DNA of 48,607 nt from Salpingoeca rosetta (lineage: Eukaryota > Protista > Choanoflagellata): NCBI GenBank assembly GCA_033442325.1, contig JAWQFM010000019.1:95046-143652 (forward strand). The letters are read 5' to 3'. The translations under genes were made by a program, and so were the position numbers. A model generated the notes under the pieces. That model was given only the letters and a program-made list of their open reading frames with translations, ran no database searches and was not told where the DNA came from. Shown in pieces: positions 27,601-35,934 of the stretch (within the stretch, counting starts at the first letter, position 1; each line of letters opens with the position of its first letter).

Positions 27601-30600
27601 CATCCATACGCTGCTGCTCTTCAATAGCACGTGACGCATCTTGAGAAAGGTCTTGCCTCTTACTGACTCCCTCCTCCTCTTCCTCTTCCTCCTCTTCCGC
27701 GTCAACGCTGTGTCCTTTCTCTTCAGCGTCCTCTGCTTCTTGTCCTTCCTGCCCTTCTTCCACCGCCACTTCAACACGCTCGTCCGCCACCTTTTCTCCA
27801 GCAACCTCCTCCTCCTCGTCCTCCTCCTCCGCGTCGGTCGTGTCGTAATCACTGACCTCATCGCTCTCATCGCCGCTAACAAACTCGTCATCCCCATCCC
27901 CACCACCACCAACACCACCAACAGCGCCATCGTCGTCATCCCCACGTGCCCCTGCCTCATGCTCCTCCTCTTCCTGCCCACGCCCTTCCTCCTCCTCCTC
28001 CTCCTCCTCCTCTTCTTCCTCATCTTCGTCGTGTTCTGTGATGTCCGCGAGGTGACTACGGCGGCGGGATTGCCGGCGGCGGTGGCGGTGGCGGCGGCGC
28101 TGACGATGGTGCTCCAGGCGTGACGCCCGCTCTTGGTCCTCTGCTGCGGCTGCGGCTGGCGCTGCAGTTGTGGGTGCTGGTGCTGTTGGTGCGTCTGGTG
28201 TCTGTTGATCGTCATGCAGATCCAACAAGGCGCCTTCCTCCTCGTCATCTGTTGTATCAGCACCGCTTCCACTCACATCCTCGTCTTCATCTTCATCCTC
28301 GCCATGCATGTCCTCCCCCTCTTCCTCCTCCTCCTCCTCCTCCTCCTCCTCAACGTCACCACCACCGGCTTCCCCAGCCATCTCTTCCTCCCCCTCTTCT
28401 TCCTCTTCTTCTTCCTCTTCTTCTTCGACGCTCACGTATTCGTCATCCACAGAATCTCCATCCACTTCGTCTTCTTCATCTGCAGACGCACCGGATGTCT
28501 CCTCCTCATCCTCATCATCATCCTCATCATCATCACCATGCATGCCCGCCATGAGGCCATCACCGCCCTCCTCATCGCCCAGCGTGCTGCGCTGCATCTG
28601 CGTCAAGAGTTCGCTCAGGCCCTGCCACAGGAACCGCGCCTCAGCATCGTCGCCGACGGCTGCACCGGCCTCCTCTCCATCGCCATCCATGGACGCGTTG
28701 TGCGACAGGGACTGCACCACGTCAGCGTGCGAGTGCGCCATGTCAAACACACTCGCACGCGCAGTGGCGCGACCACAATCACCACCATCACCACCATCGC
28801 CACCATCGTAAACGGCGTCGTGGTCATCGTTGCCGTGGTGCTCTGCAGCAACTGGCTCCTTATGCACATCGCTACCACCATCGCTAACATCTCCACCACC
28901 TCCGTTGTCGTCGTCGGTGTCGTGGTGTGGTGCCTTTGGCACATCGTCTTTGTGTTGCTCGGGTGTTGTGACAGCAGCAGCAGCATCACCCCAGGGGTCA
29001 ACGGCCTCCAGCCACGGCGCTGCTGCTGTGCTCGGTGTCGTCGTCTGGGCACGGGGCGCAAAGTCATCATCACCACCAAACGCAAACAGATGGTCGCTGG
29101 ACCGCTGGGTTGTCGTGGCTGTTGTGGTGGCTGTTTCGGCTGCGGCTATCGTGTCTGTTGTGTCTGCGGTCTTGTGTTGGCGGGAGTCAAATAATGGCTC
29201 AGACGCACTGCGAACAAACTGCTGGGTTTGAATGAGGGGATAGGGTAGAAGTGATATAATGATAGAAGCGGTAGATGGAGAGGGGCGGTAGTATTTGTGT
29301 GTGTGAGAGGGGGATGGTTCAGGGAATGGTGGGGTGGGAATGAGGTGTGGGTGGGCAGGTTGAATCAACATGGCAGCCAGGGTGTGGATGGTGGAGATGA
29401 GAAAGGCAAGTAGACCGCACCTCATTGTCTTTGGCTGCGCTCTTTGGAGACGACCCTGTTTGTGAACACGAGATGCGCATGACAGCAAACGCCATCAGCC
29501 TACAAATTGTTTCGGGGCATGGGAGCAACGAAGCAACACAAACGTACACATGCACCGAGCAAACACAGAAGAAAATCACACACACACATACACACACACA
29601 CTTCAACAAACAAACAAACAAACAAACAAACAAACAAACAAACAAACAAACAAACAAACAAACAAACAAACAAACAAACAAACAAACAAACAAACAAACA
29701 AACAAAGCACCTGTGGATGGCTGCGCGTGCACGTGTGCGATTGAGCGGCCGAGGTGGAGGTCGTGGAAGGAGCGGCACACGTCGGCAGCGTCGGGCCGCT
29801 GTTCGCTGTCCGGCGCCCAGCACGCGCGCAGCAGCAGCATGTGGTCATCCGTGCACTCTGCACGTGCGTTGACGGGTGGAGGGGGGATGGAGAGTGAACG
29901 AGGTTACATATGCGAGAGGAAGAAAATTATGCTGCACACAATGCACACAGACACACACGCACACACACGCGCGCGCACACACACGCACACAGACACACAC
30001 GCACACATGTTCTCACCGGCTGGAGTGGGGAGTTGGACGCCGTCTTTGTGTGTCGCGTCGAAGTTTGGGAGCTGACGACAGCGGTTGAGAATCTCCCACG
30101 CGCACAGCCCGAACATATACACGTCGCTCTTGAAACTGTACACCCTATTGATGGTGATCATCATAATGGTGGTGGTGATGGTTGGTGGTGGCTGGCGTTA
30201 GGCCAGGAAACACAAATGCGTTGTCTTGAACGCTACAACACACAATGACGATGTGGCACGAAGAAGTAAGAGCACCAGTGCATGCGCGTGTGCGCGTGTG
30301 CATGTGTGCATGCGTGTGTGCACGTACAGGAAGTTGACAGTCTCTGGCGGGGCGCGATCGAGGCAGATGTCATCGCGATTGACAATCATCACTTGATCGA
30401 TGCAGCGTGCAGACCTGATGGTGGGCAAGATAAAACGGGGAGGGGATGAGCGGGTAGCGTCAACACTGACGCGACAAGCAACTGCACATACACATGCACA
30501 TGCACTTGCACATACACATACACATACATATACATGAACATGCACACACATACATACACACGCGCGCGCGCAGGCATGTACACGCCAGCATGTGTGCATG

Positions 30601-33600: not shown

Positions 33601-35934
33601 AGTTATTGTTGTTGTTGTTGTTGTTGTTGTTGTTGTTGTTGTTGTTGTTGTTGTTGTTGTTGTTGTTGTTGTTGTTGTTGTTGTGATGGGTGTTAGGAGG
33701 ACGAACAGAGTGCAGCGCAATAGGCCACGACCAAGATGCACATGTACATTCCAACAACCTCTCTTCAGCGATCAATCAGCACCACCGACAAACAACAACG
33801 ACGTCAACAGCCCGATGATGTGTCGGGTGGTGGTGGCCGGACCTGATTGCGAGAGCGCTGAGGGCGAGCATGGCGTCAGTGTCGACCATCACATATCCGC
33901 CGCAGTCGATCTTCATCGCGGCAGCGCCGTGTACCATGTACACCCCGTGCACCTGCAGTCAAGGGGGTGTTGAGGGGGGGGGGGGAAGGCCGCGTGGTGG
34001 GTGCAGGGCAAATGGACATGTATCGATAGTGTGAGGAAACAAACACAAGTCAAGTATGCAAAGTTGTCCACAAACACGCACGTGCAGATTGGCAAATTGA
34101 CAGACATACAGACAGACAGACACACACACACACACACACACACACACACGCACGCACACACACACACACACACACACACACACACACACACACACACACG
34201 CACAAGCACGCACACACACACACATACACACACACACACACACGCGCACAAGCACCCCCCCCCCTAACCTGGCTGAAGAGGTAGTCAAAGGCTTTTGGGT
34301 GGGCGGCAGCGAATTCTGCGAGCCGGTGTGCATGGGCAATGGGCGCAAATGCGCAGCGCAGCGAGAACGTGTCGTGGCCCGCGCGCAGCAGCGCGGAGAT
34401 CTGGTGCGGGTTGAAGTGGCGAAAAGGGAGAGAGAGAGAGGTGGGATGGGTTGTGTGTGGGTGTGCCCGGGGGGGGGGGTTTAGGGTTGATATTGGTGGG
34501 TTGAGGAGGTGATGTTGGAGGAGAGGGGGGGGGGGAGGGTTGTTGTGGGGTGGGGGAAGGCAGAGGAGATGTTGGTGCGCAATGTGTATTCATATGATCG
34601 TGCATGCGCACGCGTGTGCATGTGAAGTGGCGGTTGTACTGTGAACACCACAGGCGTGTCTGTGGTGTGGTGGTCACCTTTGCGTGTGGCTGATACAGGC
34701 GACGGCGGCACGGTTCTGAGGAGCAACAACCACGCATACGTACATGAGCAGGAACGGAAAGTGTGACACACATCCCCACACATACACACGCACACACACA
34801 CACACACACACACACACACACACACACACACACACACACACACACACACACACACACACACACACACACACACACACACACACACACACGCACACACAAA
34901 ACCAGTCCAGATGTGCGTACCGTTGAGGTTTGACTCTGCGAGTGCAAAGTACGCTGTGAGTGGAGGGCCGCGTGGTGGCGGTGGGGATGAGGTGATCTCC
35001 GTGTCGCCATCACCGCCATCGCCAGACGTCAGCGTCGAGCAGACAGCCTCCACAATGTCCTGTCATGGCGGTGGTTATTGGTAACGCGTGTCCCATGTTC
35101 ACGTGAGCATACGACATACACACGCACACACACACACATGCGAAGACAAACGCGGCGTGTGGTTGTTATCACCCACCTGCACTGTTGCTTGCTTATCGTA
35201 CTCGACGAGCGTTGTCCCGCCAGTCTCCAGCAGGATCTGCGTCACGGAGGCCAAGGGAGGAAGGGAAGAAGGGGGACGTCAGCATCGTCAACGATGGCAC
35301 GGAGCAGATGCAAAAGGACGGACGAGACAGACACACAGACGGACACTTAAATACAATAAATACAGGCACACACACATACACAAGAGACACACCTCCAAGC
35401 GGTTGTATTTGGCGTGGAGCGTGGAGCTGAAGCGGCGCCGGGAGAACCCTGTTGGCGACTTGGGCACATTCGACCTGCAGTGCATGGGCGTGTTGTTGAT
35501 TGAGCCAAGGGGAGTGAGCGAAGGTAGGCGAGTAGACGTGTGAATAAACGGTATGGTTCAGCGCAATTGGCTCGATCAGCAATAGGACAACCAACACACA
35601 TACACACGCACACAGACAAACAGACAGACAGACACACACACACACATACACACACACACACACACACACACACACACACACACGCACACAGACAGAGACA
35701 GAGACAGAGACAGAGACACACGAACAACACGCAAGTGTCCGCGTCAGAGGAGGCCATGAACAACCGCCCTGTTCATCCTTACGTATTGGTTGTCGCGGTG
35801 GAGCGTTGCTGTTGGTTCGATGCCTGGAACGAGTGCTGCGATGGTTGCGACTGCGGCGAGTGCAGCTGCGCCTGTGCCTCCTGCTTACTTTGCTGCTGCC
35901 CACGTCGCAACGAGAACAAGTTGCGCACAGACAT
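24630..35934 (-). CDS. Focal adhesion kinase (FAK/PTK2)-family protein: FERM + catalytically degenerate tyrosine kinase + long acidic disordered region + FAT-like bundle
   Basis: FERM exons: FSLRCAFAP...KAFDYLFSQ, DAMLALSALAIR, FDKEIGLSTFIPEDLM, KKLRRALLAELKKISSL, METFTAAVNGFLRV (cf. FAK LEKDVGLKRFFPKSLL, AENMADLIDGYCRL). Kinase: ALSFLASRSYVHCDIRAKNV...VKLSSFG, PPETVNF, SDVYMFGLCAWEIL, CWAPDSEQRP. FAT-like end: ETLYVFMKSIIALS...LPLLKRV...DVAEACDLIETQCVQIKTLLS*. Confidence 0.82.
29605..29706. repeat. (CAAA)n tetranucleotide microsatellite
   Basis: Perfect CAAA run in an intron of the FAK-like gene. Confidence 0.95.
33527..33684. repeat. (GTT)n microsatellite interrupted by TTAA
   Basis: Intronic. 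The same interrupted motif occurs at ~31928-32050. Confidence 0.9.

Follow-up and report, generated by a model that had tools for sequence, protein, structure and literature searches.

FAK is commonly portrayed as the enzyme at the catalytic hub of integrin signalling. How far it also acts in animal cells independently of its kinase is under debate; kinase-dead FAK mutants have kinase-independent scaffolding functions. For choanoflagellates, Fairclough et al. 2013 reported that Salpingoeca rosetta has FAK and Fer homologs, both of which are lost in M. brevicollis, and their kinome table lists one S. rosetta FAK, PTSG_07290, filed under TK/FAK (PMC4054682). For PTSG_07290, InterPro lists protein kinase, Ser-Thr/Tyr kinase, FERM central domain and Band 4.1, and neither SH2 nor FAT (PMC4054682). 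In other papers, choanoflagellates are said to lack FAK, or its origin is dated to Porifera. Here we describe a FAK-like gene on the minus strand of a 48,607-nucleotide stretch of the S. rosetta genome (assembly GCA_033442325.1, contig JAWQFM010000019.1, positions 95,046 to 143,652; the whole stretch is called the window), the kinase domain of which is predicted to be catalytically inactive.

The original prediction for this locus was a FAK homolog of full architecture with a pseudokinase domain, kept after integrin loss and possibly overlooked because of its divergence. Its view of choanoflagellates as lacking a canonical FAK reflects the older view repeated in other papers, and is right for M. 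brevicollis but not for S. rosetta, which has one homolog; with that homolog on record since 2013, the gene had not been overlooked (PMC4054682). We favor, with moderate confidence, the reading that the locus is PTSG_07290, an intact, spliced and modestly expressed gene of the FAK family, with 17 or more exons, a FERM-type region, a dead kinase domain, a non-catalytic mode of action and a probable acidic tail. It is probable that the gene has been known since 2013 and that its dead-kinase detail is new; no published mention of dead catalytic motifs in PTSG_07290 was found in the literature.

Exon structure and the altered kinase domain

A model of 17 exons was read from the sequence borders, phases and open frames of the minus strand at 35934-29733. 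The introns have GT-AG borders, the phases are consistent, and every exon is open (736 codons in all), in line with the earlier remark that the exons appear open. Exon 1 is a plausible first exon, because the Na+/H+ exchanger gene runs the opposite way from ~37.5 kb. The exons and the probable last exon are as follows.

35783-35934, minus: exon 1, start codon (35934) and Q/S-rich N-terminus; ATG with in-frame upstream stop; donor AC/GTAAGG, phase 2
35393-35474, minus: exon 2; acceptor CAG/G completes the split codon, donor GAG/GTGTGT
35177-35236, minus: exon 3 (ILLETGGTTLVEYDKQATVQ), putative FERM F1 start, so labelled by eye; GT-AG borders, phase 0
34898-35059, minus: exon 4, putative FERM F1, from the exon model; without Pfam match
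34269-34400, minus: exon 5 (..TFSLRCAFAP..AFDYLFSQ), putative F1/F2 border; without Pfam or PDB match, single copy in the genome
33843-33952, minus: exon 6, putative F2, from the exon model
33242-33302, minus: exon 7 (FDKEIGLSTFIPEDLMASFE), putative F2, from the exon model
32922-32990, minus: exon 8 (SSDKKLRRALLAELKK..), putative F2 basic patch, from the exon model
32512-32666, minus: exon 9, putative F2/F3; without Pfam, PDB or Atlas match, single copy
32209-32311, minus: exon 10, putative F3, from the exon model
31646-31906, minus: exon 11, putative F3 end and linker of ~60 residues (two Tyr, no YAEI); single copy
31338-31520, minus: exon 12, degenerate kinase N-lobe with VILR, and alphaC FWQE at the exon end, by position and spacing
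30861-31072, minus: exon 13, kinase subdomains IV-VIa; PF07714 match, tyrosine kinases in PDB
30608-30682, minus: exon 14, catalytic loop HCDIRAKN and SFG; by Pfam, BLASTP and local profile
30328-30465, minus: exon 15, long activation segment without Tyr and with PPETVNF at its end, from the exon model
30017-30144, minus: exon 16, subdomain IX with SDVYMFG; Pfam match, no FAK-like paralog in the genome
29733-29857, minus: exon 17, subdomain XI with CWAPDSEQRP; Pfam and local profile; phase-0 donor GTGCAC at 29732
25448-29221, minus: probable last exon, low-complexity tail of ~1257 codons in an open frame, stop at 25448-25450; phase-0 acceptor CAG/CAG at 29221

The Pfam family PK_Tyr_Ser-Thr (PF07714) matched four separate exons in the collinear order of the profile, indicating that the kinase motifs are more than chance. 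The matches were as follows.

Piece 30860-31135 (exon 13): profile positions 54-121, 34.9 bits, E 1.3e-8
Piece 30463-30786 (exon 14): profile positions 116-148, E 7.9e-4
Piece 29907-30197 (exon 16): profile positions 178-203, E 9.5e-5
Piece 29322-29903 (exon 17): profile positions 225-256, E 0.26

A local kinase hidden Markov model (HMM), built from four matches of the representative protein search described below, placed exons 13, 14, 16 and 17 at positions 51-118, 121-143, 178-200 and 232-255, respectively; the score of exon 13 is circular here, because the source sequences of the model had been found with that exon. The structural residues are kept, namely the alphaC Glu, the HxD Asp, the catalytic-loop Asn, a PPE/APE-like Glu, DVYMFG and CW..RP. 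As in the FAK family, a tyrosine-kinase-type domain follows a short linker, which in the exon model is, at ~60 residues, too short to accommodate an SH2 domain. PETVNF is found at 30347-30330, in the APE region, and SDVYMFG at 30128-30108, in subdomain IX. Both are kinase motifs, and the original prediction, which had cited them for a FAK-type FERM signature as well, named no FERM motif.

The altered catalytic motifs were located close to where they had been reported: HCDIRAKN at 30675-30652 and S-F-G at 30615-30607, with an intron splitting the Gly codon (noted at 30607-30680), and VILR at 31400-31389 (noted at ~31385). Exon 14 (VHCDIRAKNVSVYRPDTVKLSSF) aligned by BLASTP to VHRDLAARNILVESDSCAKLSDF (VHRDLAARN..LSDF) of kinase P0001 with an E value of 1e-4, and on this alignment HRD is changed to HCD and SDF to SSF, which puts Ser in place of the DFG Asp, with the catalytic Asp and Asn kept. 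Alignment to the local HMM also gave Cys for the HRD Arg and Ser for the DFG Asp, so that the reported changes of HRDIAARN to HCDIRAKN and of DFG to SFG are borne out by both methods. The spacing from VILR to the following alphaC Glu is 17 residues, as it is from VAVK to FEREI in P0001, and the FWQE of exon 12 runs on into exon 13 (ALRLADLLHPQL) in the usual alphaC-to-beta4 pattern. Apart from exon 12, which is without GxGxxG, no piece between the linker and exon 13 is both open and compatible in phase. Because exon 12 is too degenerate for any tool to align, VILR is taken as the equivalent of VAIK by position and spacing; the proposed change of VAIK to VILR thus holds for the residues and their spacing, while the equivalence is positional.

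No alternative GxGxxG, VA[IV]K, HRD or DFG was found in any minus-strand frame of 25400-36100, indicating that no hidden alternative exon rescues the ATP site and agreeing with the reported loss of the Gly-rich loop. The activation segment in exon 15 is ~17 residues longer than usual and contains no Tyr, and the Tyr sites of the linker are LSLYRTAP and RSQYNGS; both the activation-loop YY and the YAEI site of FAK are therefore absent, as had been claimed. The set expected of a competent FAK kinase (GxGxxG, VAIK Lys, HRD and DFG) is not found, the DFG Asp being Ser by alignment and the beta3 Lys being Arg by spacing, as in a pseudokinase, with the HRD Asp retained. The domain is probably inactive as a catalyst, the residues for binding of ATP and magnesium having been lost, and on this point our prediction coincides with the original one.

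Probable tail, putative FERM-type region and likely identity of the gene

Downstream of the kinase exons, an acidic open frame of 1346 codons (25448-29488, minus strand) consists of E, D and G runs followed by a K/S/T/R-rich part, with extreme low complexity. The phase-0 donor of exon 17 (GTGCAC, 29732) is compatible with the phase-0 acceptor CAG/CAG at the start of the tail exon (29221). The join was made by phase and by gene numbering, and the PTSG numbering suggests that the acidic open reading frame (ORF) is not a separate gene. The FAK-like gene probably ends with this frame as its final exon, in which case it would replace the proline-rich/FAT region. The tail ORF gave a weak Utp14 match only in Pfam, and Focal_AT matched neither the 1346-residue ORF nor any place in the genome, in which all family searches were run in six frames (55.4 Mb, 68 contigs; exon 15 was represented in searches by 30330-30464 only). 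IPR005189 is likewise not present in the supplements of Fairclough et al. 2013 (PMC4054682). With no FAT domain in profile searches of the tail ORF and the genome, the full FAK architecture that had been proposed is not supported. Word-index searches with the acidic ORF, whole or as its first 230 residues, returned no match and were uninformative owing to the length window and low-complexity words; a search with the neighboring 716-residue ORF returned no match and was uninformative as well.

By eye, exons 3-11 resemble a FERM region of the animal FAK type, a likeness that the search tools did not confirm. The stretches putatively of this kind are TFSLRCAFAP..AFDYLFSQ, FDKEIGLSTFIPEDL, DKKLRRALLAELKK, HFDNYRLPCCVG and ..ETFTAAVNGFLRV. 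Exon 8 (SSDKKLRRALLAELKK) may correspond to the animal FAK F2 basic patch KAKTLRK. Weak FERM scores are expected for each exon, because the exons are 20-87 residues long.

The identity of the locus was assigned by gene order. An ankyrin-repeat gene at 7051-9300 (plus strand; Ank, E 6.7e-19) lies three genes before the FAK-like gene, and is followed in order by a Roco gene, a coiled-coil gene and the FAK-like gene. PTSG_07287 is annotated with ankyrin only (PMC4054682), and the ankyrin-repeat gene is probably this one. On the other side, a dual-specificity phosphatase motif, VLVHCAAGCNRS (VHCAAGCNRS), is located at ~61282 in window coordinates (minus strand), ~25 kb beyond the start of the FAK-like gene, a distance that gives room for six genes at the average spacing of the genome. 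PTSG_07297 is a dual-specificity phosphatase (PMC4054682), to which the motif probably belongs. The FAK-like gene is thus very likely PTSG_07290.

Paralogs of exons 5, 9, 11 and 16 were not found in the genome. The one weak genome match of exon 16, at C6:1463506, was rejected as a Kelch-type receptor-like kinase that is not FAK. The gene at that place (1462000-1471000, minus strand) combines an intact kinase domain (HRDLK, DFG, SDVFAFG) with a long ORF that is Kelch-like and a stretch resembling a membrane span.

Several other features of the locus were observed. The coiled-coil gene between the Roco and FAK-like genes (~17300-22900, plus strand) is multi-exon and golgin-like, and the two pieces of it that were tried had no Pfam match. 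Assembly gaps (N runs) are found at ~22030-22140 and ~23350-23800, between this gene and the end of the acidic ORF. The Na+/H+ exchanger gene (~37500-42200, plus strand; PF00999, E 4.4e-13 on 38487-39029) is divergent from the FAK-like gene and contains an N run at ~37.9-38.0 kb. Almost every intron of the FAK-like gene carries a long microsatellite, including sense-strand (GT)n, AAC repeats and a 102-base stretch of a 4-base (TTTG/CAAA) repeat at 29605-29706; the other positions are 31900-32060, 33140-33225, 33530-33690, 34060-34260, 34777-34899 and 35600-35700. The string ATCAGGTC occurs in frame in exons 6, 11 and 15 (33848, 31675 and 30417, minus strand), where it is the donor used in exon 6 and is read through in exons 11 and 15; this could be chance, or the sites could be alternative donors.

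Expression and alternative readings

PTSG_07290 shows 5-20 fragments per kilobase per million (FPKM) across all samples and cell types, and by the file header it is highest in solitary swimmers, with a log2 ratio of 1.1 (~2-fold) versus attached cells and P 1.7e-3 (PMC4054682). The file, supplement 12, is labelled 'upregulated in thecate cells', yet its header gives Swim/Attach and Swim/Colony ratios, so it seems to be a list for swimming cells (PMC4054682). From these header ratios, the gene is mildly higher in swimmers and not in attached cells. When 31-letter words of 29200-36000 were sampled, eight runs that are probably RNA and come from two or more studies contained a share of 0.24-0.31 of them, and DNA-like runs a share of 0.71-0.93. 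The spliced exon model predicts a share of 0.25; this agreement shows consistency and does not amount to proof. The gene appears to be intact and expressed, not decayed.

The reading of an intact, kinase-dead FAK-family gene has the following points against it. Pfam assigned no FERM family to any exon or stop-free piece, single FERM-type exons had no FERM match in PDB phmmer or Atlas, and FERM_N_2 and FERM_C_FAK1 had no match in the six-frame genome search. FERM_M in the same search matched 23 stretches at ~14-16 loci elsewhere and none at the FAK-like locus; crossing FERM loci with kinase loci proved nothing, the list of PF07714 matches being incomplete. Of the profile checks that had been proposed, PK_Tyr_Ser-Thr accordingly succeeded on four exons, while FERM and Focal_AT gave no match exon by exon. 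The FERM domain and the FAK label come from the literature, in the 2013 InterPro and kinome entries, and the FERM domain also from reading by eye. In the PDB search with exons 13 and 16, FAK/PYK2 were among the best matches and slightly below EGFR, MET and RON, RON being the best for exon 16. In the kinase N-lobe, exon 12 was not aligned by Pfam, PDB phmmer, BLASTP or the local HMM, and it holds one Lys (RYSKS) 38 residues before the alphaC Glu. Furthermore, the identity with PTSG_07290 is tied by gene order and not by sequence, the splice junctions and the tail join are drawn from borders and phase and not from reads, and the dead motifs are known at the sequence level from one species, which makes the case a modest one.

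The FERM-type and kinase-fold parts may alternatively belong to a protein that is not a true FAK ortholog, being either a choanoflagellate-specific fusion or a derivative of a FERM-SH2-kinase-kinase protein (JAK-like, Syk-type) that lost its SH2 and active kinase. We regard this as unlikely, yet it is the best of the alternatives. Exon-level searches do not put FAK first, and a search of 1.8 billion representative proteins with exon 13 returned four distant kinases only, none of them FAK, with no self match. FAT, YAEI and YY are all absent, a constraint-based study of the tyrosine kinome dates the FAK-specific motifs to Porifera, and lineage-specific kinase architectures are numerous in choanoflagellates, a FERM-SH2 double kinase among them. 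Against this, the manual kinome annotation of 2013, which used BLAST, HMMs, trees and accessory domains, arrived at FAK (PMC4054682). FAK proteins are built in this way, with FERM followed directly by a short linker and a single kinase domain, the 60-residue linker is too short for an SH2, and the search of the S. rosetta genome with exon 16 missed the other FERM-kinase gene.

A smaller chance is given to an atypical active kinase with unusual nucleotide binding, having its Lys elsewhere as in WNK or acting independently of Mg as reported for CASK. The catalytic Asp (HCD), the Asn (KN) and the alphaC Glu are retained, and the upstream Lys of exon 12 adjoins a GGGG run, which would suit this explanation; however, the Gly loop, the beta3 Lys and the DFG Asp are missing together, the N-lobe is too degenerate for any profile, and the activation loop has no tyrosines. 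Least probable of all is a decaying or non-functional gene with frames open by chance, or an artefact of the exon model: the sequence is very divergent, no relatives of it were found among the 1.8 billion representative proteins, the introns are filled with microsatellites and the junctions are without read-level support, but 17 exons are open with 16 canonical introns of matching phases, the structural kinase residues are kept, the word share in the probable RNA runs agrees with the exon model, and expression in every cell type is published (PMC4054682).

Significance and comparison with known systems

If the locus is an intact kinase-dead FAK-family gene, its putative FERM region would bind the membrane or other proteins, and its kinase domain would act in docking or autoinhibition, so that the mode of action would be non-catalytic. 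The ATP/Mg site of that domain is lost, with no Gly loop, Arg for the beta3 Lys and Ser for the DFG Asp, and the tyrosines by which animal FAK is regulated are missing as well. The tail may supply other contacts, and, since there is no FAT domain, paxillin- or talin-type targeting would not be expected. We infer a scaffold function and retention after integrin loss, as the original prediction did. More tentatively, and with somewhat less than even expectation, the sole FAK-family gene of this choanoflagellate may encode a naturally kinase-dead and FAT-less FERM-pseudokinase with an acidic disordered tail of ~1,250 residues, expressed in all cell types.

A dead-kinase, FAT-less state that is fixed and yet expressed would mean that the FERM-kinase unit is selectable without catalysis, focal-adhesion targeting or integrins. 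If true, this would be the first natural catalytically dead FAK, and the FERM-kinase module would have been kept, in an animal relative that is genetically tractable, for a role that needs neither catalysis nor integrins. Transfection and gene editing are possible in S. rosetta, which makes the scaffold idea testable. Reconstructions of the adhesion toolkit of the animal ancestor use the statement that S. rosetta "has FAK", and the result qualifies this statement. The claim is nevertheless modest: the gene itself is not new, and the support comes from sequence of one species.

The gene resembles animal FAK/PYK2 (PTK2, PTK2B) and the predicted FAK of Capsaspora owczarzaki in its putative FERM-type region, short linker and single domain of tyrosine-kinase fold, and its motifs in subdomains IX and XI are close to those of animal FAK (DVYMFG..WEIL, CW..RP). 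It differs from animal FAK/PYK2 in that the Gly loop is missing, the Lys is changed to Arg, and HCD and SFG are in place; the Y397-type YAEI, the activation-loop YY and FAT are also missing, the activation segment is ~17 residues longer, and a low-complexity tail of ~1,250 residues is probably present instead. With the kinase-dead FAK mutants it shares a predicted FERM and an inert kinase fold for binding, whereas in S. rosetta the predicted dead state occurs naturally, fixed in the one FAK-family gene that the species has, and FAT is absent.

An N-terminal FERM on a protein of tyrosine-kinase fold, putative in the present gene, is seen in UTK05mod of M. brevicollis (FERM-SH2-kinase-kinase), of which the S. 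rosetta genome has a copy at another place, and in animal JAKs, the latter also carrying a pseudokinase domain. In contrast to these, the FAK-like gene has no SH2 and no second kinase domain; for the other choanoflagellate gene, two kinase domains are reported, both of them intact. PTK7/CCK4 and HER3 are similar in combining a tyrosine-kinase fold, altered catalytic motifs and action by binding; these are receptors, whereas the S. rosetta protein is predicted to be cytoplasmic, with a putative FERM head and with more of the ATP site lost.

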